The notes beneath the pieces were generated by a model that saw only the letters and a program-made list of their open reading frames with translations, was not told the DNA's origin and made no database searches. The position numbers and the translations under genes are program-made. A stretch of DNA of 63,536 bases, filler included, from Dimorphilus gyrociliatus (Eukaryota > Animalia > Annelida), in the NCBI GenBank assembly GCA_904063045.1. It is 5 parts of 5 records of this genome, joined end to end, with 100 filler letters (N's around TTAATTAATTAA, not from the genome) between each part and the next. Parts side by side here need not be neighbours in the genome. Positions count along the whole stretch, not along the records: positions 33,332 to 48,306 come from CAJFCJ010000050.1; 4 more parts are not named here. The stretch is one strand, 5' to 3'. Below, piece after piece: positions 13,091 through 48,306 of the stretch (its first letter is position 1; each line of letters begins with the position of its first letter).

Positions 13091-14753
13091 TTAGACATTA
13101 AAATGCTGTTGTACAAACCATGAAATGGATTATCTAGAAAGCTTGATTGAAAAATACTGAAAATTATCACAATGATAAACATTTTCTTTTTTCAAGATGG
13201 TACATTTCATAAATCTACTCTTATTTATTAATAACACTTTTTATATTCAGGCTATTGAACAGTTCTTCAATATTTATTCTAGTCTAGTTAGACTTTTTAA
13301 AAATCACTCAAAATTTAAACTCTAACTGCTCTCTATTTATCTAAAGCTTTTGAAAGTATCATGTAAAACTTTATGAAAAGAAGGATGTATGATTGAATTG
13401 CTGAATTTATATAATGTATATAAAATAAGTTCTGGATTGATATAGTAAAGAAAGGAAATTCTTTTTCTTGTTCATCTTCAATGCTATTCTGCTGATGTAG
13501 AGTATTACAAAAATAAATGCATCACTCTTATTAACAAATGAAAACCCTTTGGGACTTAAACAGACTTCAATTCCTTCTTTTGTAGGCCTTTTTGGTAGGT
13601 CTAAACACTTCTTCAGGGTTAAACTAACCCTGTTATTAATTACAATAGAGTTTTGAAATTTCCTAAATAGGGAAATATTAGTGATTTGATTTTAAATGCT
13701 TTTACAGAATTAGAATACCCTTTATAGTTTTTCTCTCTTTTGGGATTCTCTTCAGGGATAGTCACAAACCTAATAAGTCATTTGATCCCATGCATGTTGT
13801 CAAAAGTGATCAGAGACTAGTTCATTGGATTTGTTCCTATGCATGATTAGTAATCCTATCTTGTATAGTTCTAGTAGTGAGACAGGATTTTGCATAGGGT
13901 ACATTGGATAATGTAAATTATCCAACTGGAAGTACAGTTAAAATCTTCCTCAACTTTAAATACATTACGATTTCTATTCTGGTTATTCATTTACTGGTGT
14001 TCCTATGAAATTATCACAGAATGATGAATTAAAGTTAATGTTTAATAGGATGTTTATCATAAATCCAAACTTTTTAAAATACAATTAACTTCTTTAGTGT
14101 TCATATTAAAGAAATAGTTTGTAATAAAAAAAATTTTGTTGGTTGAAGATCAGGTATTATAGTTTTTAAAATGAGTTTTTGCTTCTGCATTATCCCTATT
14201 CATATGATAATAACGGATTTTTGTCAGGTAGCATTGGTTTTTTAAAATAAATAGTTCTTCATTTCTCTCTTTCAACACTTTGTACATTTCACAGATGGTA
14301 TCAATTTGTTGTACATTATCTTCTGGTTTATTTTCAGTCATTTCATTTCTTTCAACTTCCATCCTCTGCTCATGATAATTAAATTCTTCATCATCTTCCT
14401 GTTCATTCTCTTTTCCCTAAATAGACTCTTAATCTTCCTCTGGTTCCTCAGCATGCTCTTGTATTTCCTCTTGCTGTTCATCTTCATGATAAAATATTTT
14501 TATTTTGCCACATAGTTCATCAGCTAATATCCCAGATGATTGGCACCCAAATATATAATATATATATTAAAAACTGAAATAATTTTTCTACTTCTTACCA
14601 ATTGCACTTTGTTGTATTGTAATTGTAGGAATTTCTTCTTCTTCAGAACAGTATTCATCATTTCGAATCATTTATCAACTTACCAAAGTACTGGTTCGAA
14701 TAGAACCTTTCCAGTTCGTCCACAAACAGTCTTAAGAAATGTTATTACAGTCA

Positions 14754-33331: not shown

Positions 33332-33582
33332 TTTTTACTTTTTACAGGTTTTGCTCAATATTATTTTTTATTTTAATTCTAAGTGGTAACTGAGTATTGG
33401 TATTGTTAGCATTGTTAGACTATGAGAGTTTTTACTTACTTTGATTGTTCTGTGATTTTTTAAAATTATTAGAGTCCTATGATTGAAGATTGTTGTTTTG
33501 ATTGGCTTGTAGTCTTTTTCTTTTCCTTCCAGTTCTTTGGATGTTTTGTTGGTTGAGAATGGTTTGAGCCTGTACGATAATT

Positions 33583-34542
33583 TCATTCATAATTATTGTT
33601 AACAGCATTCCTTAAAGGTGATAATTTAGTTGGAGGTATTCTTGCATGGAATGGGTCTCCTTTTATCATTTGGTTAACATTGATAATATTTGTAAACATT
33701 TTCTGAAGGATATGTTGGAATGTGTTGTTGATTGGAGATTTCTGAAGCTGATATTTTTGAACCAACATGATATGTTTTGTTATTGAGTTATTTTCTGATA
33801 TCAGGTAGAAGTGTTTATCAGTGTCATGTTCTTCTTGAAATGGAACATTTAAACAAACTACCTTTGCTTTTAACTTCCAGTTTAAAAGTATTTCTTTACA
33901 GTTGGCAAATGACAATTCTTTAATATTCAAAATGATTATATTTCCTTGAAATCTGATGTTGTTCTGAACAAGTCTAACATTATTCAAATCAACATCTCCC
34001 AAACTATGATCACTTAAGATTAGCAAATCCAAGACATCTGGAAAGTTGATTGCTGGTTGTTGTATTTTAAAAGAATTTATAGCTTCATCTTCACTCAAAT
34101 TTATTCCAATTCTGTGGAGTTGCTGTATAATATTTTCTCTGATGTCAATTGTTTTCCTGTTTAATTTGAAAGAATTTTCAAGTTTGACAGTGTTGTCTGT
34201 TTTGTTCAGATGCTCATAGATTAAGTTAACAAGATGTTCTGTGTTAATAAATCTTTTCTGTTCATTATGTTCAACTAGCCATAATTCCTTGTTACAAAAT
34301 TCTTTGAATTGTGACATTTTGGTAAGAAGAGCTTTTTCATGTTCCTTCTCATTGTATAGTGGAGGTTGGATGGCTTTATTTCTCATATACTTTTTTATGC
34401 AATTGTAATACAATTGAAAGTTGAAAAAGTCTTGAAATGAAGAAGGAAGAAAATGATCAACATTGATGTTATTTGCAATCACATTTTTTGAGTTTTCAAT
34501 GATCACTTTAGTATTTGTATTAATTGGATTACTTGAAGCCAT
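33583..34542 (-). CDS. 319-aa accessory ORF (ORF2) downstream of the Penelope-like RT; degenerate SGNH-like domain
   Basis: Intact ATG-initiated ORF. DLLILSDHSLGDV and IKELSFANCKEILLNWKLKAKVVCLN align by eye to DVLMICDSSFRDV and INKLTFEDILPILSNWDIECKYLCIH in ORF1. Confidence 0.6.
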   Translation of the reverse strand: MASSNPINTNTKVIIENSKNVIANNINVDHFLPSSFQDFFNFQLYYNCIKKYMRNKAIQPPLYNEKEHEKALLTKMSQFKEFCNKELWLVEHNEQKRFINTEHLVNLIYEHLNKTDNTVKLENSFKLNRKTIDIRENIIQQLHRIGINLSEDEAINSFKIQQPAINFPDVLDLLILSDHSLGDVDLNNVRLVQNNIRFQGNIIILNIKELSFANCKEILLNWKLKAKVVCLNVPFQEEHDTDKHFYLISENNSITKHIMLVQKYQLQKSPINNTFQHILQKMFTNIINVNQMIKGDPFHARIPPTKLSPLRNAVNNNYE

Positions 34543-34758
34543 TGGTATAAACCTATTTTAAATGAAGCAAACTGGTTAATGAAATGTATTTTTTCAAAAA
34601 TGTGTTCTATATATATATTGGGATAAATGTATACTTTGTGGAAGTTCTACACATACTGCCTACAACTTTTACAAAATGTTTTAACTATTTCTACAATTTA
34701 CCATAAGGTAACTTTAACAAATTCTATGTTCTACAAGAAACTAATATTAAGTTTTTGT

Positions 34759-37700
34759 TTAATTTTTTGCTATCTTCTTAATTCTTCTTCCAGTTCTTTT
34801 AATTACAGGTGGATCACTTGTTTTTCCACAACTCCCTTCATTGTGCTCATTGGATTTAAACTTTCTGGTGATTGTTTCATCCAATTTTGGCTTCTTATCT
34901 GGAATGCAAGAAGGTTCTTTTTGACAAGTTGTCCTCTTGTAGAAGTTCTTGATTGTTGGCAATTTGGCTTTTTCTAATAAAGATGTTTCAGTACTTGTAT
35001 CATGTGAGCTATTGTTCTTGGAGCAAGCAAAAGAAGTGGATTCAATTTGTTGCTGTTGATAGCTTGTATTAGTATTTATTAGTTTTACATATATATTTGT
35101 GTTGTTGGTATAAGCAAATATCAAATGAAGGTTTTTCAAAGTGGGATTTTCTATTCTAAATTTACAATAACATTTATGAATTTTTTTAATCAATGGCTGT
35201 AGTTGGTTTCCAAAAGGTATAATGAATGGTAATTTTGTTGAATTTTGGCAAGAAGTGAATTTTGCCAAACCAAAAGGATGAAACATGATATATTTTGTAT
35301 TTAATATATAAACATGTTTACAGACTTCAATTGGAGACATTTCTTTTTGTATTTGTTCATATGGAAATATTGTAATATTTTGTTGATTTTCATTAAAATG
35401 ACCATGTTCAATAAAATTCTCCACTAGTTCATCATTTTTAATTTTCAAGTACTGTCTTGACAGTAAATAATCAAGTGTTTCAAAAATATTCACATCTGTG
35501 TACTTTTGGAAAATGGAAAAAAACATTAACTGTCCACACTCTTTACATTGAAGGAGGTAAATCTGGGGTTTTTCAGCCAAAAAATTAATATAACCATTTC
35601 TATAAAGGAATTGTAATTTAAGAGGATGATATATTTTGCTTGAGATGTTGAAAAAGATTTTCATCTTCACAGGTATGTCATTGTTTTTTTCACATATTTC
35701 TTTTAATTCTCTCTGGCAGTGCTCTCTATACAAATCATCTTTCAGTACAGATTTTATTGCTTTTCTTATTTCTTTTAGGTGATAGCCTTGCTGTAAGAGT
35801 GGATGGATAACAGTTTGACAGGTTAGATAAAAAATAACATTGGAGGAACTATTTTTAAAAAGTCTTTGAAATTGAGCTTTCAACAATCCTTTAAAAGTGT
35901 GCTTTGGATGAAGAGAATTTCGATGTAACTGGTGAAATGTTTCACATTTTTTGAAGTATGTTATATGATCCAAATGATTGGAAGACAGAAATCTTGTTCC
36001 TTTAAAGAGAACCAAATCAAGAAAGTTGACTGAAGTTGAGCTAATTTTTTCCTTGAATTTCAGATTCTTTAAAATACTGTTGGCTTTTCTAAGATAATTA
36101 ACAAATTTTTCAACTCCTTCAGTCCAAATCAGAAAGATATCATCTAAATATCTTTTATAGAAAAATGGCTTTGGTTTTATATTAAAAAGAAAAACTTCTT
36201 CAATCCAAGCCATCCATAAATTAGCATATGCTGGAGCATAACTCTGACCCATAGCACATCCAAATTTTTGAAGAAATATTTTGTTTAAAAATTTAAAATG
36301 ATTCTTGTGCAAATTATACTGGAGAAGTTCTATTAGAAAGTCATCAGGTCTATTGTTTGAAGGGTACTTTTGAAAAAAGTATTTGACAGCTTTCAGACCA
36401 GTATATGTATCAATATTTGTGTACATATTTTTAACATCAAGTGTTATAAGAAGAGCATCAGAGGGAATGTTAATTCTACTTAGTTGATTTAAAAAATTTT
36501 GAGAGTTGTCAATATAGGAAGCATGTAATGTACTAATTGGTTTCAAGTAGTGTGATAGAAATCTTGATATTTCATAGGATTCAGTTCTCAAGTTGCTTAC
36601 AACAGGTCTACCTTTAGGTATTTTTCCATTTATAAGCCATTCATCTCTTTCTTTGTGAATCTTTGGCAATCCATAAAATATCCTATGCTTGATTAAATTT
36701 TGTTTCATACAAACAGAGTCTAACAGTTCTTGATATTCATCATCATTAAGCATAACTTTGAATCTTTTTATCAAGTTTTTATAATAAGTAATAGACTGTT
36801 TTAAAAAGCTATCATTTTCTGTTGTTTGGTTACATGATATTGTTGATAGGACAGAATACTGTTTTGAGTCTGAAAGAAGCTGTTCACACATAGTGACATA
36901 ATCATCAGTGTTTTGTATAACAATGCAAGATCCTTTATCAGCTGGCTTAATAACAATATCTAGTGAGAGAAATTTTGAAAGAGAAGAGAAAAATGTCTTA
37001 TCAAACATTTGCAGTTTACCATTATTTTCTTTGAAAATATGTTTCTTTATAGCAGATTTACATTCTTTAAAAAGTTTCATTAATGTATCATTGTCATCAT
37101 CATCATTTTCAACAATAACTGGATTACAATACTCTTTAGGGTGCATGGGTTTCCATTTGTGATTGATGAATCTGAGACTTGATGAATTTGAATTAACACT
37201 TTGCTTTTTCAAAAATGATATTTTTTTGTAAAATTTTTCTAAATTCAATAAAGCTTGTTCTCTCCATTGCTTTTCTTTGATGAGTTGATAAACAAATTTT
37301 AAGCCAAGATTTAAGAAATTATTAACATCATGGGGTATTTGATATTTGCTTAAGTTAACAACATATTGTGTATTTAATTCATTTGGAATAGAAAAAAGGG
37401 ACACAATTATTACCTGATTATTAACTTCATCCTTGCTGATTTCTGATCCTACCAATGTCTTTTCTTTGTCATGTTTAATAATTTTCTCAAGGGACTTGAA
37501 TATAACATCAATGGAAAATTCTTGAGCTTTTTTGGTGAGGTGCTTTGATTTGGAGTTTCCTGTTGGGTTATTGAGATATCCAAGATTTTTCATGTTGGAG
37601 AAGTCTAATATTGTTGCATTCTGTGAGGTAGCCTGTTTAAATTCTTTGATTGGAGAAAATTCTCTCTTTGTGCCAAATGGGATGGCAAGGATAACATTTT

Positions 37701-39258
37701 TACAATCTCCAAATGTTGCTTTCAAAAAGTTCACAACTCCAACTGATCTTCCTGTGATGTTCAGACTTGCATGAATGCAAAGATATTTACATTCAATATC
37801 CCAATTTGAGAGTATGGGCAAAATATCTTCAAAAGTTAATTTGTTAATATTTATCAAAATTCCATGTTTTAAAAGTTTATTAGTAGCTGCAGATAGAGCA
37901 ACATTCTTTATCTGAACATCTCTAAAAGAGCTATCACAAATCATTAAAACATCTGTTTTAAGAGGAATGTTTGGGGGTAAAGTTTTTATAAAGCTTTTTG
38001 CTTCTTTCTCTGATAAGAAGCTCTTTCCTCCTTCTCTGTACCAGTCAGTTAACTTTTTATCTTTTCTATATTGATTTCTTACAACCATTCTCCATCCAAG
38101 ATATTTTCCAATATGGTCTGTGATAGTGAGTATTGATGAATTTATGTTGTGTAATGAATTATTCTGATCCTGACAATCATTTGGTAATTCATTTAACAAT
38201 CTTCTTTCTTCCAATTCCAACCATGCATCTTCATCAAATAAATCCAATTCACTAGAATCAACTGACAAATTGTTAAATCCCAGAGTTTGACCAAGACTAT
38301 TTTCTGGTGGAGATTCACCAATTTGTGTTGATGTTTTCAAGGGTGATCCAATTGTTGATAAAGACATTTGTGGTGAAAATTGACTAACAATACTTTCTTG
38401 ATTAGAGTCATTCTTTTCTTTGGCAGTTTTGATTATAGTTTCTTCAGCTTTTGAACCATCATTCTTAGCACTTCCTGCATACAGTTCATCAGAAGGTTTT
38501 AAAAAATCTTGTTCATCACATTCTGTATAAAATTTTTCAACAGTTTTAGAACAGTCCTTTTCCACATTTCCAACATTTCTTTCTTCATTATCTTCTTCAA
38601 TGTTTTCACAAATAATGTCCTTGTCTTCAAGTTTAGAGTGCTTTTCTATTTCGAATTCAATACCATTAGGATCTCTGACAGTAGATGTTGATCTTTTATC
38701 CAAATCTTGAGCAGTTTTACTTTCTGGAAGAATACATTCATTGCTTTTAATAGTCTTTGATTTGTTATCTATTTCAGAGTTTCTTTTACATTCCATACAA
38801 AATTCAAGCAGAGTCTGTTTAACATTTTCCACAAAATTTTTATCCAAGTTTAGATATTTTTCAATGAATGGCTTTGATATGCATCTTTTCAAATCAGTGA
38901 CATCAACTCCTTTGCATAAAATAATTAAATTTTTTGCATAGTTTTCTAATGTTATAAACATATCCAGATTCTCCTTATACTTTAGTTCAATTTTAGTTTT
39001 AAACTTTTCAAATTCATCTTTCATTACATTTTGATAGAATTTTGTAATGTTGAATCTATTTTTAAAGTACAAAAACTCTGACATAGAACATATCTTTTTG
39101 AATGGAATTCCATTTTCATATTCAATCAACTTTTCAACAATAAATTTAATTTGTTTGCATAGGTCATAGTAGGCTGTTTTTGGATGTAGAGTAAACAATT
39201 CCTTATTCTCAATGATGCTTGGATAGTACCAGGGGTAGACAAGTCCTTTATTATCCAT
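34759..39258 (-). CDS. Penelope-like retroelement polyprotein (ORF1); first ATG at 39258 (the track starts at a TTG at 39303)
   Basis: PLE RT motifs IVIKPADKG, FYGLPKIHK, GRPVVS, LITLDVKNMYTNI, QKFGCAMG..YAPAYANLWM, KRYLDD, VNFLDL and HP..TFKG..KAQFQR are present in an uninterrupted frame. Confidence 0.92.
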   Translation of the reverse strand: MDNKGLVYPWYYPSIIENKELFTLHPKTAYYDLCKQIKFIVEKLIEYENGIPFKKICSMSEFLYFKNRFNITKFYQNVMKDEFEKFKTKIELKYKENLDMFITLENYAKNLIILCKGVDVTDLKRCISKPFIEKYLNLDKNFVENVKQTLLEFCMECKRNSEIDNKSKTIKSNECILPESKTAQDLDKRSTSTVRDPNGIEFEIEKHSKLEDKDIICENIEEDNEERNVGNVEKDCSKTVEKFYTECDEQDFLKPSDELYAGSAKNDGSKAEETIIKTAKEKNDSNQESIVSQFSPQMSLSTIGSPLKTSTQIGESPPENSLGQTLGFNNLSVDSSELDLFDEDAWLELEERRLLNELPNDCQDQNNSLHNINSSILTITDHIGKYLGWRMVVRNQYRKDKKLTDWYREGGKSFLSEKEAKSFIKTLPPNIPLKTDVLMICDSSFRDVQIKNVALSAATNKLLKHGILININKLTFEDILPILSNWDIECKYLCIHASLNITGRSVGVVNFLKATFGDCKNVILAIPFGTKREFSPIKEFKQATSQNATILDFSNMKNLGYLNNPTGNSKSKHLTKKAQEFSIDVIFKSLEKIIKHDKEKTLVGSEISKDEVNNQVIIVSLFSIPNELNTQYVVNLSKYQIPHDVNNFLNLGLKFVYQLIKEKQWREQALLNLEKFYKKISFLKKQSVNSNSSSLRFINHKWKPMHPKEYCNPVIVENDDDDNDTLMKLFKECKSAIKKHIFKENNGKLQMFDKTFFSSLSKFLSLDIVIKPADKGSCIVIQNTDDYVTMCEQLLSDSKQYSVLSTISCNQTTENDSFLKQSITYYKNLIKRFKVMLNDDEYQELLDSVCMKQNLIKHRIFYGLPKIHKERDEWLINGKIPKGRPVVSNLRTESYEISRFLSHYLKPISTLHASYIDNSQNFLNQLSRINIPSDALLITLDVKNMYTNIDTYTGLKAVKYFFQKYPSNNRPDDFLIELLQYNLHKNHFKFLNKIFLQKFGCAMGQSYAPAYANLWMAWIEEVFLFNIKPKPFFYKRYLDDIFLIWTEGVEKFVNYLRKANSILKNLKFKEKISSTSVNFLDLVLFKGTRFLSSNHLDHITYFKKCETFHQLHRNSLHPKHTFKGLLKAQFQRLFKNSSSNVIFYLTCQTVIHPLLQQGYHLKEIRKAIKSVLKDDLYREHCQRELKEICEKNNDIPVKMKIFFNISSKIYHPLKLQFLYRNGYINFLAEKPQIYLLQCKECGQLMFFSIFQKYTDVNIFETLDYLLSRQYLKIKNDELVENFIEHGHFNENQQNITIFPYEQIQKEMSPIEVCKHVYILNTKYIMFHPFGLAKFTSCQNSTKLPFIIPFGNQLQPLIKKIHKCYCKFRIENPTLKNLHLIFAYTNNTNIYVKLINTNTSYQQQQIESTSFACSKNNSSHDTSTETSLLEKAKLPTIKNFYKRTTCQKEPSCIPDKKPKLDETITRKFKSNEHNEGSCGKTSDPPVIKRTGRRIKKIAKN

Positions 39259-40104
39259 ATTGGTATTTGTTGTTTGATTGAAAGATTTCAAATCTTTAGA
39301 CAAAGAAATAAAAGAAACATAAAAGTATGTTAGAAGGAACCCTAAAGTATGTAAAGGTATGTGTAGACCTTACAAAGAACACCATTATCAATATTATATG
39401 ATTAAAATCAATAGTATGTAATCAAAAGAGTAACTGTTAAACCAAAAATATTTTGCTTATGTAGAGGAATTCCTTTAATATTATATATAAATATATGTAC
39501 ATACTTTGCAAAATATATATAACAAAACTTAGAACTCAGTTGACCTGCCAGCTAAAAGCCAGAAAGCAACTTAGGTACACTGGACAATATATAATATAGA
39601 GTACATACCAGAATATGTTCACTTGATATTTTCCAAAAATGTTAAAGAAGAAGTTCAGGAGAAGTTTTTCACTCAGAAGAAGTTAGCACTTGCACAAGGT
39701 AGTCCTTTCAGGTGTAGAGCTATAGCTAGACTGATAAAACAAGGAGTATTTATACCAATGGATGAAGAAAATTCCCATGTCAAGAAAGACCCTCTGCCAA
39801 CTGTTATCAAAACAAATCTATCTAATAGATTGTGCCACTTGTGAAATGGCACTTTGAACAAAGACACCCAAGTGAGAGTGCTACCTCTTATTACATAACC
39901 TATATGTGAAGTTTCATATATACCTATGAAATATTATTCCTATTTATTTAAAATAATATTACTAAAATCTTAATGTACAATTAATTCCTTATATTTTGAT
40001 ATTAAAATCATTATGATCAAGAAATTTTTTTTGAAAAGACAAGTTTTGGAATAATTTGATAAATTAAAATAAACTACCAAATTTCTAGTCATTAAATTTA
40101 ATAA

Positions 40105-40289
40105 CTATGCCAAAGGAATAGACATGCTTCCTGCCAGATGGCAAACATGCATTGACAATAATGGGGAATTTGAAGCTAAATAGACATACCTAAGACATTA
40201 ATTAACATTTATGAATAAGCATATTTTGTATTTTTTTATCTTTTAGCTGTTAGATAAAAATCATGAGAATTTTTCAGGTGACCCTAATA
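40105..40289 (+). mobile_element. Mariner 3' remnant with terminal repeat, next to (TA)n
   Basis: YAKGIDMLPARWQTCIDNNGEF, then an end GAGAATTTTTCAGGTGACCCTAATA; (TA)n at about 40297-40320. Confidence 0.65.
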
Positions 40290-40459
40290 TAATAGATATA
40301 TATATATATATATATATATAACATTTTTCACATTTTTCATTTAAAGAAAATATATATAACCTATATATATATATAGAATTTCATATTTCTTAAGTAATTT
40401 AGAAAGAAATATAATTTTCAACTAATTAAAACTCATTACAAGTTTTTGCCATATTAGTA

Positions 40460-41330
40460 ATTGACCCCCCATGGTGATAAAACAATACTTCCTTTTAAAA
40501 CTATATGTAGAGTCTGTAGTTGAACTAGTTTAAATATTTTTGCAACATATCTATTAAACCCCACATAGTGAAAAAACTTTTTGTCATAACTTATCTTTAA
40601 TTTTTAATGTTTGTTGTGTATTAAGAAAAGTAACAAAAACTATGGGAAAGCAGTGGGGAAAATATTATGCCAAAATTTATTTGTATTGGAAACTGCATTG
40701 TAAATGTTATTTTGTATTTCATTTTTTTAAAAAAATATTTATTAAAATGTGCATTTCACAAGGTTGTTCAGACCCCCTATAGTAAACTTAGGAAATTAAT
40801 ATAATTTTTTTACTTTTATTTGTTATTTGACATAAATATTTTCAAAATATTTAAATTAACCACCATGTTTTAACTTTCATTTCTGTTAATGATCCTTGAT
40901 TTAAACTAGATTTCTACCATATTTTTGCAAAGTTTGAATGATTATAATTAAAGGAAAATATACATGCAATATAGATACCCCTTATGGTGAAATTACAGAA
41001 ATTTGTCAAGGTTATTTGGTTGATATAGTTATTTATTGCATCAGGGGTGCATTTTTTAAATAATTAAAACTCATTGAAAATTTAGTTCAAATTATTAATT
41101 AACCCCCTATGATGGTGATACAATGATTATACATATTAAGGATTTAACACTGGGAAATGGTTAGTTTCTTAAGGTTTCCAATACATGATGTTAAGGTAAT
41201 GGACTACTTTTAAGGGTTAGGAAACTTTGAACAGATAGTAATAAAAGAAATTCATCAAGATTCTATATAACTTGATGAATATAAAATTATTATTTCAATT
41301 GGTGAAGTTTCTTCCCTATGGTGAAAGGAT
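40460..41330 (+). repeat. Dispersed array of ~7 copies of a motif ACCCC(C/T)ATGGTGA with unrelated spacers
   Basis: Copies near 40464, 40557, 40772, 40859 (weak), 40977, 41102 and 41312. Confidence 0.6.
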
Positions 41331-41730
41331 ATCTAGCTGTTGGTTATGAAATTGACAAATGACAGAATGTTACATTATCATGTCAAACATATGATATTAT
41401 TGTATAGCATAATATCAAATGGTTGTATTCTTTGTTTTTTATGTGAAAGACATGTGGCAATATGAAATTTCTTATATATCTGTTTAGGGCAAATGATTGG
41501 AGGTACATCTGGTGTTATTTAAAAACAGTCATGCTACTCTTCTTATTTTTGTGTTATGTTTTTGGTATTCTTTACAAAAATAGTTGAATAGCTAAAAAAT
41601 GTATATTATTCCAAAAATACAAAGTTCAAAATAACTTTAATAAGAAGAATGTTCTCAAATATAACATCAGTTAATAGCATTATAAGAGGAGATCCATTTC
41701 AGAATTATATTCCACTTGGAAAAATATATC
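41100..41730 (+). pseudogene. Decayed, inverted paralogue of ORF2
   Basis: MFSNITSVNSIIRGDPFQNYIP (from 41649) versus MFTNIINVNQMIKGDPFHARIP in ORF2; IAKKCILFQKYKVQ versus ITKHIMLVQKYQLQ. The 5' boundary is approximate. Confidence 0.7.
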
Positions 41731-42129
41731 TGCATTGAGAAATGATTTATTGATGTCTTTTAAATCCATGAATATGATTGTAAAATATACTAAAGTTAAA
41801 AAATTAGTTGAAAGAAGATGGTAGAAAATATTCAATTCCAAATGTTTAATAGATTATATTTCAATTATTTTCTATTCTTTCAATCTGGTTTTGTTGTGTT
41901 CTGTTTGCTATTTTAAAAAATCTAAAACAAAACTTTCAAGTAAGATATTGTTATATTTTTTTTCAACAGAATTAAGATGGAGCAAAAAGAATACCAAGAC
42001 ACACACAACACAACAGCCATAATATATATGTGAATAAATGTTTATAATCCTAATCTAATGGTAACACAACAAAAAAATATTCTAACTACATAAACAACTT
42101 GCTAAAAAAGGCTGAATATTTAAAGTTTC

Positions 42130-43680
42130 TTCTTGATTTTTTGGCCAATTCTTACAATTTTTTGTGATACTTCTGGTTGTTGCTGTTGTTCTTCTGTTTC
42201 ATTTTCCATCTTTCTCTTTACAGTAAATTTTCTTGTTACTGTTTCCAAATTCTGCTTCTCTAATGAAGATGGAGTAGAAAGTGTTTTATTTGCGTTTGCT
42301 TCATTTACAGTTTTGGCATTGTGACATTTTTCATTTATTTCCTTTGATTTTCTAACCTAGTCATCAGAATTATCTCTATTTTCTAATTTTTTTTAAATTT
42401 TCTTGTGGAGAAGGCAGATTGTTGAATTGTGTTGCAAGTGTGTTTTTTTTCTTATAAAAATTCTTAATTGTTGATATTCTTAATATGTTCAATATATTTT
42501 TTTCTTTTAAAGTTTCATTTCTATTTTGTTTTTCTTTCAATGTTCTGTTATCTCTATCATTATTATCCCTTTCATTGGAAAATGAAGTAGACTGTGCTGG
42601 TTCCTGTTAGTTAGATATTTTATTATGAATTAATTTGAAATTACTACATTTGTTGTTTGTAAAAGCAAACATCAGTTGAATTTGTTTAAATTTTCAATCT
42701 TTTTTGTCAAGTTTCCATAAGTCTTTAATATATTTTAAACACAGATTTAAGAAATGATATATGTCATTTGGAATCTGATAGCATATTGCAAATTTAATTG
42801 GCTATTGAAAATATCTACCTTATTAAGAGATGAATATTTATTGTTTGTTACTTCATTTTCATCTTTCAGTAGTCAATGTAAACTTTTCATCACCAAGTCA
42901 ATGGAAAATTCTTAAAAATTTTTTGTTAAATGATTGGATTTTGAATTTCCAGTGGGGCTTTCTGAATATCCCAACTTTTTGATATTTGTCATATTAAGTA
43001 TAATAGTTTAATTTTTTGCTGCCACTTTAACATCATTATAGGAACAGAATGATGGTTTAATACCAAATGGCATAGCAATAATTACATTCTTACAATTCCC
43101 AAACTTCTTTTTCAGATAAGTTGTAATTCCATTAGTGGCTTTTGGAGAATTCAAGTTCAAATGAATAAAAACATATTTATAATCAATATTCCATTAAAAT
43201 CAGAATTTTTCATAATATGCTCATCCCCTTCTAGTATTGGCAGATGTTTTTAATGGTTACACCAAATTAAAACTGTTTGATAAAAATAGTTTTGTTACTA
43301 CATTCTCTTCATTCAAAGCATGCTTAATGATATCATTTAAAAGGTGTTCAGAAGGAAATTTTTTCCAACTTTCTTCAATGTTTTTATCAATAAAAGTGTG
43401 ATTTTCAACTTGATCTGAATTTTTTTTTGGTCTCATCACTTGTAGTAATTATCTTTTGTTCATGGATTAAATGTAATGATGTATAATCTACATTTTCTAT
43501 ACCTGTCTCTTTTGTTATAGGTATTTTTATTTCATTCTTGTTAACCATATTAATAAATTTAAGATTTTAGAGATCCATTTCTTGATGGAAGCATTCCTTC
43601 TCTTTAAAGATGATAGGGTAAAACCATGGATGATGTTGATTAACTTTGCTTTTGTGTTCCATCTTCTTTGGTTTAGAATT
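42130..43680 (-). pseudogene. Decayed paralogue of ORF1 lacking the RT and endonuclease region
   Basis: HPWFYPIIFKEKECF versus YPWYYPSIIENKELF; FGNCKNVIIAMPFG versus FGDCKNVILAIPFG; PTGNSKSNHLTK versus PTGNSKSKHLTK; YQIPNDIYHFLNLCLKYI (42780-42727) versus YQIPHDVNNFLNLGLKFV. No RT motifs follow. Confidence 0.8.
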
Positions 43681-43984
43681 CATCATTCTATTTTGATAAC
43701 AAAAAAAGGAAAACATAAATATTCAAAATAATATGTTAATTATAGCAGAGAGCAAAAAGTAAAAGGGCAAACCACAAAAAGCAAGAAGTAAAATGCAATA
43801 TATATCTGATATCCTTCCTCTTTAAATACATATTAAAAAAACAAAATTTAAGAGTGTTTTTTAGGGATAAAAACAATTCTCAAAATTAAATTGAAATACT
43901 ACAACTTGAATTAATTACAATGAATCCTTAATTTCTAAACTACTTTTTTAATCAGGAAAAAATCATTATTTTTATTAAGGACAT

Positions 43985-44370
43985 TTTAAATTTATTAAGT
44001 CAAAATCATTAGCAACAAAAGCCAAATCATTTAACATGAAATCTATAAACCTCTATTGCAAAAATAATAAATTTTAGAATCAATTGAATGGAATCTATGA
44101 AAAAATGGATAAATGAATGTTAATGAATATACCTTATAGATTTGCTAAATTCAAATTATTAGCCAAGATAAAGCCAAATTATTAAACATTAAATCTATAA
44201 GATGGTTTATTCTTAGATTCAGAAAGTCAATATCAAATACTTAGAAAGCATAATCAATTGAAAAGAACCTATATTTAAAAAAAAGAGAATTTTGCTGATA
44301 ACATAGATTTAAAAAGTTTAAATCATTAGCAAATGAAGCCAAATCAATTAACACAAAATCTAAATGTCTC
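43985..44370. repeat. Degenerate tandem repeat, 3 units of 150-167 bp
   Basis: AAAT(C/T)ATTAGC...AAGCCAAAT...AACA..AAATCTA at about 44003, 44153 and 44320. Confidence 0.65.
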
Positions 44371-47300
44371 AGAAGAAGAAAAAAAAGAAAAATTCAATGA
44401 AAATATTTAGAAAAGAGGATTCACTTTCCATCTATTTTATGGATGTTTTCAAATTGAAGAGTCATAGCAAAAGCCACTGTATTCAAGTATGAAAAAATCC
44501 AAACTTTTATTTAAAAGGTATGGAAAAGTTAAAGGAATTTTGTAAAAAGGAAGAATACCTTAGTTCATGAATGTGTTTGTTTTTAAATATATTTAAAGAG
44601 CAAAACAAATAAGAAAAAATTGTAATAAAAACACTGATAAATGAGAAAATTTATAGAAAAAGTCTAGAAATCTCTCCAAATAGATAAAAACCTTCAAAAC
44701 AAGACATAAACAACCTACCTTGTTAGATTTTGATGATTCCTTTCAAAAGTAGTGGTATAAATCAAAACTCAGGTACTGTCCTTATCAACTGGTGGGCTAG
44801 GAACTTGTTAACAGTTTCCATTTATATGTAATTTTTAAATGTTTGTTGGAAAATGCCTACAAAAAATTTGTTATTTAAATATTTTCTTACTTACTCTTGT
44901 AGAATATTCAATGTTTTCTTTTCACTTCATTCAAGTTTAGTTAAGGTAACTGGGTAATTCATTCAAAATGTTGATGATCTCTGTTTAAAATGCCAAAAAA
45001 ATAAAGATTAAACAGGGTCTACAAAAGACTTATCTGAACTTTTTAAAAATCAAATATATTATTGTCAGAAGGAAAATTTTCTGTGGTGGATTGTCTTTGT
45101 GTGTAGACTATGTTAAAGGCCTGAAAAAAGACAATTCTAATGATATGTAATATGTATATACTTGTTGCAATATTGTGCAAAAATATTGAAATAAGTGAAA
45201 TTTTTTCTTACTTTTAAAAAATGCAAATTGTTTGATGATATTTTCATTAACTTTTGATAATGAGATAGACAAACTTGATTACAGCTGTTTGAAATGAAAC
45301 TGTCAAATGCTTTTATAATCTAACTAAAAATAGTTTTAATGAATTTCTTACATTCAGAAGTTAAAAAAGGTTTGCCAAATGCAAAGGGATAATCAGTTTA
45401 AAAACAGTCAATCACAACTGTTATAACAATATAATCCATTATTATCTGTAAGGAAAAGAGACATGTTAATGGTTAATTTAACAAATACATATGTACCTCC
45501 TCAATGGTGACAAATGTTAGAATGAGCAAGTGTGGGGTTTATATACATACAGGTAGAGAAGACCCCCATGTTAAAAAAAACCCCTGATAAGCTTCAATCA
45601 GTAATTATCACACTATGTGTTACATCATTCAAGATAAAAAGGATTTTCTTTCCATGTAATTAAGTGAAAGTGCCACTCTGTTCCCTTGATTTTTGGGATT
45701 AAGCATATCAGTATGTCATATAAGTCATTTGCTTTTTTGATTAATATACTTAATTCATTTGATTTGTGAATTACAGTTTTATACAGTAAAACAATTATAT
45801 TATTTGAATTGTTATTTTTTAAGTAGGTCACATCATCATTAACCAATGCATACAGCTGCTCCAGTTGCCATATATTCTATTTCAAGTATAACTACACCAA
45901 ACTATTAATTGGATAAACTGCAATCATTTGGGAAATGGTTAGTGAATGTATCCTGCAACATATTTTGCTAGGATAAAGGATTACAATTAGGGTTAGGAAA
46001 ACTACATCAAATTATTCATTGTAGATGTATAAAAAAGTTTGTCAGGATTGGAAAAGAATCTATGGAGATGGAGCACTAACAAGTATTTTTAATTGTACTA
46101 TTATATTATGATGATTATGAAATGTTAAACTTTGTAATACAACAAGGTCAGTTAATATTCTACCTTTTTTTTACTTAAACATTTCTCAACTATTAGATGG
46201 AATATTATATTAAATGTTTGAAGCAAATTGATGGTAAATTTATTTACTTATTTATTGTTGACACAGAAAAGTAAGAAAACTTTACAAAATGTTTAGAAAT
46301 ATCTAACCTACAATATAAATACAACACAAGTTAATAATGAATATTTATAAGTTAGCAAATAAGTGTTCAAGTACCATCTTTTGATCTTCTTTTTCTTCAA
46401 GTATATTGAATCCACCTTTATGTTTTATCATTTTCTCTTCAATGTTCTTTAGTAACGAAATAAAGTTCATTTGATCATCTTTCAATATTTTTTCATAGTG
46501 TTTTGTAAAGTAATGATTTGGAAAAACTATCTTTTCTAATTTAGTTGGCTGTGTTTTAAATTTTGTAGAAAAAAGTTTTATAGGGCATAAACCACTTAAT
46601 ATTCATCCTAATTATGAAAAATAATAATTATTTTGTTTGAAAAATATCCTATAAAAATCCTATAACTTAAATTTAATGTTTCTGAGCTTCTAATTCAGGT
46701 TTGTACCTACATATAGTTTATTTAATTTACTAACACCTAACTTATACAGCCTTCCAAAAATAAAAATTTTTTCCATAAAAGAAATTATTTTTTGTTGAAA
46801 AATTCAATCCTAAACATCCTAAAAACTATGCACAAATCCTTGAATAATTGATTTAATTTAGGCATAATAATAGGCACATTCCTTGTCTAAAGAAAGTAAT
46901 TATTCAGCATAACTCTTATTTTTATTACTGATTTAATAATTTTCGCAAGAAAAGTTAAACATTTCTAACTTAACCTAAATTCATAATCTTTTTCTACACA
47001 CAAAACAAAGATTCTAACCTGGCAAAAGCTAGAATGGAACCTGTCTTCACCAAACAATACTACAAATAACTTACTTTGAAACTGTTATGCTATGTTGAAG
47101 GATGTAAAACCAAAAGAATACTTTTGCTGAGGAAAGGGAAGCTAATAGTAGACTTGATGGCATTTGCAAATGTCAGACATGTATTGAGTACAAGGTAGGT
47201 GTAGGTTTGGCTTTAAAAGAAATATAATTAGTTATTAGTTAACTAAAGAACAAAAAAATTATATTGTCAATAATTTGTATTGTAAATTTTTGGTGAATGA

Positions 47301-48306
47301 ATACAAGGTTACAATATTTGTATAAAAATATGTCTCTATTCACCCATTAATTTCAATTCAAACATTTGATTTTTTACTTTTTACCCACCAAATCTGAAGT
47401 AATTCCACCTCAATTCAAATAGAATGCCAAGAAGAGTTTGTAACCCTGGATAAAAGAATGAGTTTAATAGAAAAAAAGCAATAGATATGTTGTCAATAAT
47501 CTTACAAGATTTAATATCCTATTTGCAAATGTAGATTGTTCAGATCTGTATGAAAATAAGTAAAGTGAAATACAAAGTATCAATCTATGAAGAATACAAA
47601 ACCTTTTTCCACATGCACAGTCCAAGATAACAAAAGCTTGAATGATTTTGGTTAGATTTTTATCAAGTATATATACCTTACCTGAATGTTTGTTTGGCAA
47701 TTTAATGTTTGTTTAGTACTTTACAATCAAGTTTTTATTCAATGTAATAAATTGAATTATTTAGTCTTATGTTTATTGACCACTACTGTTAATCAATCTT
47801 TAAACATCACTAATTGTTTTGATAGAAAAAGGCTTATGAGACTTGACAATTAGCAATTGTATAAGCCAATTTAAATGTACCAAACAAACACATTTTTAAA
47901 GAATAATCGTTTGCAATCCTTAAGTATTATGTAACTGTTAATAGTCATTTATTTTGTATTTTTTGTTTTATATGTAGAAATATCATTTAAAAATACTTTA
48001 TATATTATACTTTATATATCTGGTTGTTATTTCAGATGGAAAATTGGTATGCTAGGGTTGAAAATTCAAACAAATTTCTTATCAATCTTGGATATCATAT
48101 TGACAACATGGATGAAACTGACAACTTTGTAACTTATATTAATTTGTATGATAGGAAAATTGAGATTATGAGATTATTTAATAAGGAAAGGGATGAAGCA
48201 ATGCAAAGTTTATTACATGAACATGGTAAAATTGTTGAACATCTGAAAAGATAAAAGAAAAATACAATTTTGAAATATGTCCATTCAAATTTGAAGATAT
48301 ATTTTC

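Follow-up and report, generated by a model that had tools for sequence, protein, structure and literature searches.

Penelope-like elements (PLEs) with a C-terminal GIY-YIG endonuclease (EN) comprise Neptune, Nematis and Penelope/Poseidon, the canonical C-terminal EN+ PLEs (PMC8557442), and these are the first systems with which the locus described here has to be compared. The locus lies in a window of 63,536 nt (the whole stretch of DNA analysed, filler included) from the annelid Dimorphilus gyrociliatus, assembly GCA_904063045.1, in which positions 33332-48306 derive from contig CAJFCJ010000050.1. Here, we have identified two intact open reading frames (ORFs) on the minus strand, ORF1 encoding a reverse transcriptase (RT) polyprotein and ORF2 a smaller accessory protein. 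In our reading, to which we give a probability of roughly 0.6, the left 6 kb of the contig hold an intact copy of a PLE whose lineage has a dead nuclease, two ORFs and SGNH-fold modules.

Naiad and Chlamys carry an N-terminal GIY-YIG EN, a CxC motif, DKA (or DK) in the place of DKG and an insertion-in-fingers domain (IFD) between RT3 and RT4, while the Hydra clade has DKT for DKG, no GxKF/Y, an RWK motif and no CCHH (PMC8557442). The EN domain is entirely absent from the Athena and Coprina clades (PMC8557442), and the same account also describes EN-remnant (EN*) and EN-minus subclades inside the EN+ clades. PLEs deficient in the nuclease, namely Athena, Coprina and the EN-minus derivatives of Neptune, are known to have remained mobile (PMC8557442). 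In bdelloid rotifers, Terminons/Athena are PLEs without EN that carry ORFs for GDSL esterases (PMC5408684, PMC6431247), and GDSL ORFs are present in Vesta elements too (PMC5408684). Outside PLEs, an esterase (SGNH) domain is found in the ORF1 proteins of the CR1/L2/RTEX retrotransposons, which lack long terminal repeats (LTRs) (PMC3905857).

ORF1 of the present locus shares with the canonical C-terminal EN+ PLEs an RT with GxKF and DKG and no IFD, the order of RT, GIY-YIG-derived domain and tail motif (LPF..PF ... NLKD-like), and a CxxC pair between the GIY and YIG positions. Unlike them, it has the Y, R, E and N of its GIY-YIG domain replaced and an N-terminal extension of ~640 amino acids (aa) with an SGNH-fold domain; two intact ORFs are present here rather than one, and no hammerhead ribozyme was found in the sequence at hand. 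From Neptune and Nematis it differs further by lacking the CX2-5CxxC linker. Because it combines a C-terminal EN remnant with DKG and has no IFD, ORF1 does not belong to Naiad/Chlamys, and the presence of GLKF, DKG and the CxxC pair likewise sets it apart from the Hydra clade. With the EN* and EN-minus subclades it has in common the loss of nuclease function within an EN-bearing line of descent; however, the available part of that account (PMC8557442) reports no SGNH-fold domain or extra ORF for them, and our profiles found none in the relatives listed.

The resemblance to Terminons/Athena lies in a PLE RT lacking a working nuclease accompanied by GDSL/SGNH-type modules, in copies arranged head to tail, and in the fact that some GDSL derivatives (Athena-L) have no catalytic residues, as is the case for ORF2 here. 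Nonetheless, in the present locus the SGNH module stands in frame ahead of the RT within one protein and recurs as a duplicate in an ORF downstream, the RT protein still contains a GIY-YIG remnant, and the unit is of ~6 kb whereas Terminons reach up to 40 kb; neither a hammerhead ribozyme nor reverse-complement telomeric repeats were found, the 3' end being cut off. As to the CR1/L2/RTEX ORF1 proteins, they too are retrotransposon-encoded carriers of an SGNH-fold accessory domain. Yet they belong to a different retroelement class, the domain here forms part of the RT protein besides occurring in an ORF of its own, its set of catalytic residues is incomplete, and Pfam detected no similarity at the sequence level.

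ORF1 is a Penelope-like protein

ORF1 (34759-39303, minus strand) has 1514 codons from a TTG, which serves for all residue numbers of ORF1 given below. Its first ATG, at 39258, yields 1499 aa, aligns with the start of the homologous D. gyrociliatus protein DgyrCDS14925 (P0001) and is the likely eukaryotic start. Downstream, after a gap of 216 nt, follows the co-oriented ORF2 (33583-34542, minus strand; 319 aa), and no intron interrupts either ORF. They are the only two long ORFs in 33332-48306, where the G+C content is 24-32% and the sequence resembles AT-rich DNA of invertebrates rather than human DNA. Thus far, the original prediction of an intact RT polyprotein of about 1.5 thousand aa and of an intact, co-oriented accessory ORF was borne out.

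The N-terminal region of ORF1 (residues 16-170; 38794-39258, minus strand) is conserved in P0001 and in P0002, a 1327-aa protein from an 8.3-kb Logan contig of sequencing run ERR14224706. It has no match to a known family and shows 25% identity to the DgyrCDS14925 locus. An acidic linker rich in Ser, Thr, Asn and Gln follows (residues 171-389; 38137-38793, minus strand), which is poorly conserved, contains 22% D+E and is probably disordered. Next comes the domain with the predicted SGNH-hydrolase fold (residues ~449-622; 37438-37959, minus strand), recognized from its predicted structure and from structure searches, and then the PLE N-terminal motifs, RT and thumb, delimited by motifs and homology (residues 655-1180; 35764-37341, minus strand). 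Alignment with relatives placed a degenerate GIY-YIG EN remnant at residues ~1245-1350 (35254-35571, minus strand) and, behind it, a tail motif (LPFIIPF ... FAYTNNTN; 35068-35241, minus strand) common to canonical PLE relatives with the linker Cys motif and to EN-deleted relatives. The protein closes with a basic tail of low complexity (34762-35067, minus strand; 21% K+R) ending in a KRTGRRIKK-type cluster, which might serve in nuclear localization.

The motifs expected of a PLE were found in order: GLKF (667-670), DKG (789-791), LPKIHK (879-884), RT3(A) TLDV (954), RT4(B) FGCAMG (1014) and RT5(C) YLDD (1052). TLDV, FGCAMG and YLDD are invariant or nearly so among relatives, the catalytic motifs of the RT being intact, and the spacing between RT3 and RT4 is that of canonical relatives, which shows that ORF1 has no IFD. 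Searched exhaustively with HMMER, residues 315-1514 retrieved 16058 proteins at E <= 0.001. Beyond the closest two, the matches listed are mostly PLE-type proteins of 450-1000 aa; seven of nine scanned contained the Pfam GIY-YIG domain, two of them together with RVT_1. In many relatives one finds the CX2-5CxxC linker together with a GIY...CxxC...YIG core, both typical of canonical C-terminal-EN PLEs (PMC8557442), and E-values of ORF1 against canonical C-terminal EN+ PLE proteins ranged from 1e-54 to 1e-86. The Penelope-like nature of the RT, claimed beforehand, is well supported by these matches and by the PLE N-terminal motifs.

Scanned against Pfam, ORF1, ORF2 and their sub-domains yielded no meaningful match, including for RVT_1, GIY-YIG and Lipase_GDSL, and searches of PDB sequences returned nothing relevant. 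Neither ORF1, with either of its two starts, nor ORF2 had an identical entry in exact sequence look-ups. Matches to ATP13, DegQ and similar Pfam families fell below the cut-off and were disregarded. Precomputed Pfam labels list PF28514 (DUF8422) and PF26215 (HTH_animal) on P0001 and other PLE matches, in disagreement with our own Pfam scan, which gave no family for P0001 or ORF1.

Loss of the endonuclease

The EN region of ORF1, P0001 and P0002 was compared with that of 90 relatives covering it, by alignment column. The Tyr of YIG (column 574), the Gly of YIG (576), the catalytic Arg (585) and the Glu (641) are each found in 99% of these relatives, and the Asn of GLN (657) in 97%. In ORF1, P0001 and P0002, respectively, the five columns read M/M/M, F/A/G, N/D/P, V/I/L and A/A/A, GLN having become GLA in ORF1. 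The remnant keeps the overall spacing of the domain, one His and the CxxC pair (C1253 and C1256), of which both Cys are invariant; the three His columns read T/H/I (589), N/N/N (608) and H/H/H (614). The CX2-5CxxC linker motif is not kept, its three Cys columns being C, K, C in ORF1, I, N, F in P0001 and L, L, F in P0002.

Judged by these residues, the EN is catalytically dead in all three proteins. As identical losses are seen in proteins that are only 37-44% identical, the inactivation is old and the fold has been kept, which differs from a recent decay. The RT had been described as of the EN+ type, and this is right by descent, the GIY-YIG remnant being in its place, though not by function, with the catalytic Y, R, E and N all replaced. 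Having lost all of these residues, ORF1 groups functionally with the nuclease-deficient PLEs.

An SGNH-fold module shared by ORF1 and ORF2

Residues 149-233 of ORF2 match residues 430-512 of ORF1 with 34% identity (E 7e-10), and a profile built from ORF1, P0001 and P0002 recovers ORF2 at E 1.9e-10 and none of 160 other PLE proteins. Hence ORF2 is, over residues ~104-319, a paralogue of the SGNH-fold module of ORF1; its residues 1-100 match nothing known.

The shared domain was modelled with AlphaFold2 from an alignment of ORF1, P0001, P0002 and ORF2 only, giving for the ORF1 domain a mean per-residue confidence (pLDDT) of 68.8 and a predicted template modelling score (pTM) of 0.71. The first Foldseek match of this model was the alpha subunit of PAF-acetylhydrolase Ib (E 3e-5, probability 1.00), followed by TesA, GDSL lipases and acetyl-xylan esterases. 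An exhaustive VIA-align comparison with 48161 chains gave a Z of 11.7 to PAF-acetylhydrolase (1bwp_A) over 169 aligned residues, and of the best 50 chains, ranks 1-49 were all SGNH or GDSL-type hydrolases. Moreover, the language-model neighbours of the single ORF1-domain sequence were GDSL clusters (score 0.90). A language-model search with ORF2 gave no usable match. Word-based protein searches with ORF2 and with the N-domain region found no matches either, at a sensitivity so low that P0001 itself was missed. On the model, we regard the SGNH-hydrolase fold of the domain shared by ORF1 and ORF2 as established, and the SGNH-like character proposed for the accessory modules is upheld at the level of the fold.

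An earlier fold model was dropped because its alignment included the GDS-like N-terminus of another protein, P0009, for which homology could not be demonstrated and which could have biased the fold; when the prediction was repeated without it, the SGNH result held and the model improved. P0009 (951 aa, Logan) is a canonical EN+ PLE protein with an intact GIY-YIG domain, and its residues ~24-240 contain 'LGDSN' and 'GINH', resembling SGNH blocks I and III. Between this N-terminus and the SGNH domain of ORF1 the profile search was negative and hhalign gave E 0.22. Should this N-terminus be a genuine SGNH domain, P0009 would represent a separate fusion of SGNH and PLE.

In the modelled ORF1 domain, a candidate nucleophile, Ser458 ('CDS'), follows strand 1, Asn515 follows strand 3 and a candidate His588 ('KHLT') stands three residues before the last helix. 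These residues occupy the positions expected of SGNH blocks I, III and V, as judged from their place in the model. The Gly of block II and the Asp at His-3 are absent. P0001 likewise keeps Ser, Asn and His without the Gly and the Asp; P0002 has TDE at the nucleophile and no His, and ORF2 has SDH instead of GDS and is devoid of the block V region. Esterase activity of the ORF1 domain is therefore possible as far as the model goes, while it is unlikely for ORF2, which is probably non-catalytic.

A decayed second copy on the same contig

A decayed copy of ORF1 was detected at 42448-43662 on the same strand as the intact one, 2.3-4.4 kb upstream of it. Its N-terminal, SGNH-domain and C-terminal fragments are colinear and its frame is broken. 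The N-terminus of ORF1 matches ~43588-43662, with weaker N-terminal matches besides; residues 501-616, from the SGNH domain, match 42846-43193 with 47% identity over 116 codons; residues 654-671 match 42727-42780, and residues ~1390-1457 match 42448-42687. The stretch corresponding to residues ~672-1391, comprising the whole RT, is missing, in agreement with the predicted RT-less copy of the polyprotein. In terms of the pseudo-LTR or tandem copies looked for in such elements, this is a head-to-tail copy upstream, only ~47% identical to the intact one at the protein level.

Directly downstream of the decayed ORF1 copy and co-oriented with it lies a remnant of the ORF2 N-terminus (residues 15-56; 41750-41875, minus strand), 45% identical over 42 codons, broken by three in-frame stops and scoring 43.9 bits. 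A fragment of the ORF2 C-terminus (residues 278-307; 41637-41726, plus strand) lies next to it, inverted; its 30 codons are 47% identical and score 35.4 bits. Of 200 shuffles, the highest reached 26.2 bits. The original prediction had seen a decayed inverted copy of ORF2 here, which holds for the 30-codon fragment, whereas the larger remnant is co-oriented.

The presence of ORF2 remnants beside ORF1 remnants in an independent, older copy indicates that ORF2 travels with ORF1. A co-occurrence of ORF2 with the RT element in other copies, on which the original prediction had staked itself, is thus observed within this contig. We count ORF2 as part of the unit, given its paralogy to a domain of ORF1 and the recurrence of its remnants in the decayed copy in the same order, the larger one on the same strand, with scores above every shuffle. 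The opposite view, that ORF2 lies outside the element, as a gene of its own or as a segmental duplicate of the ORF1 domain that arose locally, draws on the lack of ORF2 homologues in the word search, on the absence of anything ORF2-like from the readable DgyrCDS14925 locus and on TATA-like runs before both ORFs that allow separate transcription, but we consider it very improbable given the remnants directly downstream of those of ORF1, the occurrence of the ORF1 domain to which it is paralogous in the present lineage alone and a 3.2-kb assembly gap in the corresponding region of the DgyrCDS14925 locus.

Relatives and phylogeny

DgyrCDS14925 is 44% identical to ORF1 over the N-domain, RT and C-terminus. 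In the region examined of its contig (CAJFCJ010000101.1; 10001-17215), the ORF stays open up to a 3215-N assembly gap at 13960, which implies that the deposited model of 1212 aa is truncated at its C-terminus. The readable flanks of this locus share nothing with 33332-48306 of the window, and its right flank contains transposon fragments, with a match to DDE_3 (E 2e-8) and weak matches to Retrotrans_gag and MULE.

ORF1, P0001 and P0002 form a clade with 100% support and a long stem, both in a FastTree phylogeny of 144 RT cores and in an IQ-TREE phylogeny (LG+C20 with posterior mean site frequencies) of 49, in keeping with the distinct lineage that had been suspected. A word search at the 90% cluster level revealed no further members, and cluster look-ups yielded no clade names for the relatives. 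An EN-deleted group came out as sister to this clade with FastTree and was not recovered by the mixture model of IQ-TREE, and we do not claim it. In that group the GIY-YIG domain is cleanly deleted (P0079, P0141, P0101, P0114, P0074, P0098 and P0128), and a tail motif (IP.V.PY ... GGPP..A.....L.D.LV..K) comes directly after the RT thumb. These proteins make up an apparent EN-minus group, with 93% support in the SH-like approximate likelihood ratio test (SH-aLRT) and with the EN-intact P0068 nested inside it, in the midst of EN+ relatives.

Mobile element or host gene

The context of the locus is transposon-like, with two diverged copies on one contig, ORFs without introns and no similarity between its flanks and those of the DgyrCDS14925 locus. 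We infer that the element is mobile. Several points weigh against an intact element of this kind. The contig stops 250 nt past ORF2, cutting the 3' terminus. Scans with Rfam E-values found no hammerhead ribozyme in 33332-48306 or in the DgyrCDS14925 locus, and telomeric (TTAGGG-type) repeats in 33332-48306 are not above chance, the 3' end of the present element lying off its contig. No terminal repeats common to both element ends and no target-site duplications were found. Only three members of the lineage are known, each on one contig, and the site expected for ORF2 at the DgyrCDS14925 locus, whose readable parts contain no ORF2-like sequence, falls in the 3215-N gap. The roles given below to the SGNH modules and the priming route are carried over by analogy with other elements. 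Finally, long intact ORFs together with a nuclease that is consistently dead across ~44% identity would also fit a domesticated gene.

This last point leads to the strongest competing explanation, in which ORF1, with or without ORF2, is a PLE-derived host gene that needs the RT and the SGNH domain and not the nuclease, the decayed copy being a dead paralogue. The genome of Dimorphilus is compact and transposon-poor, each member has been seen once and DgyrCDS14925 is annotated as a gene. The loss of the same nuclease residues in all three members, with ORFs that remain long and intact at 37-44% identity, and the missing terminal repeats, ribozymes and target-site duplications can be counted on the same side. 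Against it stands, 2.3 kb upstream, a decayed RT-deleted copy accompanied by remnants of ORF2. Besides, neither ORF is interrupted by an intron, the DgyrCDS14925 locus has no flanks in common with this one and sits amid transposon debris, and PLEs deficient in the nuclease are known to have remained mobile (PMC8557442). All in all, we find domestication unlikely, even if it is the most serious of the alternatives.

Less probable still is that the 5.9-kb unit is the 3' part of a larger, Terminon-like multi-ORF element whose decayed upstream ORFs would fill 39.3-48.3 kb. A deficient nuclease that occurs together with GDSL/SGNH modules and head-to-tail copies is indeed reminiscent of Terminons (PMC6431247, PMC5408684); the 3' end lies beyond the contig edge, and 7 kb of the contig are unexplained. 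However, 39304-48306 contains no ORF >78 aa and no family match, and neither hammerhead ribozymes nor an excess of telomeric repeats were found. Moreover, the RT protein has a nuclease remnant while Athena and Coprina have no EN at all (PMC8557442), and among the matches listed the relatives covering the EN region are canonical C-terminal-EN PLE proteins, in a comparison made without Athena references. The element that was foreseen had been called giant, which is not supported, the recognizable unit being of ~5.9 kb with its 3' end cut by the contig edge.

Possible mechanism and significance

If the left 6 kb is indeed a mobile two-ORF element, one transcript, or two closely spaced ones, would yield the ORF1 and ORF2 proteins, and the RT would copy the element RNA. 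An element unable to nick DNA needs existing 3'-OH ends or a nuclease acting in trans, and priming could thus start from pre-existing ends, such as breaks, chromosome ends or replication intermediates, or from a nick provided by another nuclease. Such an end-primed or trans-nuclease route has been proposed for EN-minus PLEs (PMC8557442, PMC6431247). Perhaps the SGNH-fold modules act as accessory domains of the ribonucleoprotein that bind lipids or membranes, possibly with esterase activity, by analogy with the ORF1 proteins of CR1/L2 long interspersed nuclear elements (LINEs) and the GDSL ORFs of Terminons. A TATA-rich run at 34598-34633, ~60-70 nt upstream of the ATG of ORF2 on the minus strand, means that ORF2 could have its own promoter; another such run, at 39470-39530, stands ~200-260 nt upstream of the ATG of ORF1 on the same strand.

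PLE RTs are already known, as are EN-remnant and EN-minus sublineages and the GDSL/SGNH modules of Terminons, LINEs and bdelloid LTR elements. In the literature searched, we found no SGNH-fold domain fused in frame to a canonical-type PLE RT with a degenerate C-terminal EN and accompanied by a paralogous second ORF, and the fusion of an SGNH fold and a dead nuclease with a PLE RT has so far been seen in two other sequences only. The arrangement is probably a parallel to Terminons and to the esterase ORF1 proteins of LINEs that arose independently of them. We tentatively suggest, at somewhat less than even odds, that it belongs to an undescribed PLE lineage, present in at least one annelid (Dimorphilus), that reached a Terminon-like solution on its own, giving up its own GIY-YIG nuclease and recruiting two SGNH-fold modules, of which one joined the RT protein and the other became a separate, non-catalytic ORF. 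If this is true, it would imply that a functional tie between esterase-fold domains and retrotransposition independent of a nuclease has arisen repeatedly.

SGNH/GDSL modules have been acquired separately by LINEs (CR1/L2), bdelloid LTR elements and Athena/Terminons. One more instance would lend weight to the view that they answer a general need of retroelement ribonucleoproteins, for example an association with membranes or lipids. The present locus offers a compact and intact two-protein system, in which the module is fused to a PLE RT and duplicated as ORF2 and in which the nuclease has been lost in all three members. It also adds to the PLE tree a lineage bearing a nuclease-dead remnant, which bears on the switch between nuclease-dependent and end-dependent integration.

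Remaining sequence of the contig

The contig had been thought to be built as a whole from one set of modules. This is an overstatement, as 39304-41600 and 44700-48306 have no module similarity by protein, profile or DNA self-comparison; about half of the contig, ~7.8 kb of 15 kb (33583-39303 and 41637-43722), is recognizably derived from the modules. The other ORFs of the contig have at most 78 codons, save for one of 116 codons, and the short ORFs gave no credible family match when tested.

A motif array had also been reported, and DNA self-comparison does reveal a repeated motif of ~70 nt at 43987-44362, immediately preceding the 5' end of the decayed copy, though in three copies only, spaced by ~150 nt. 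Upstream of the intact copy, no such motif was found. The interval that separates the two copies of the element contains a pair of 72-nt direct repeats (40415-40486 and 41053-41124) with 76% identity, 638 nt apart, and an (AT)17 microsatellite occupies 40287-40320, upstream of ORF1 by ~1 kb. PLEs are known to target (TA)n, but neither the (AT)17 run nor the repeat pair allowed an insertion boundary to be drawn. The 116-codon ORF (34627-34977, plus strand) is antisense to the 3' end of ORF1 and reaches into the spacer between ORF1 and ORF2; it matches no family and probably arose by chance.

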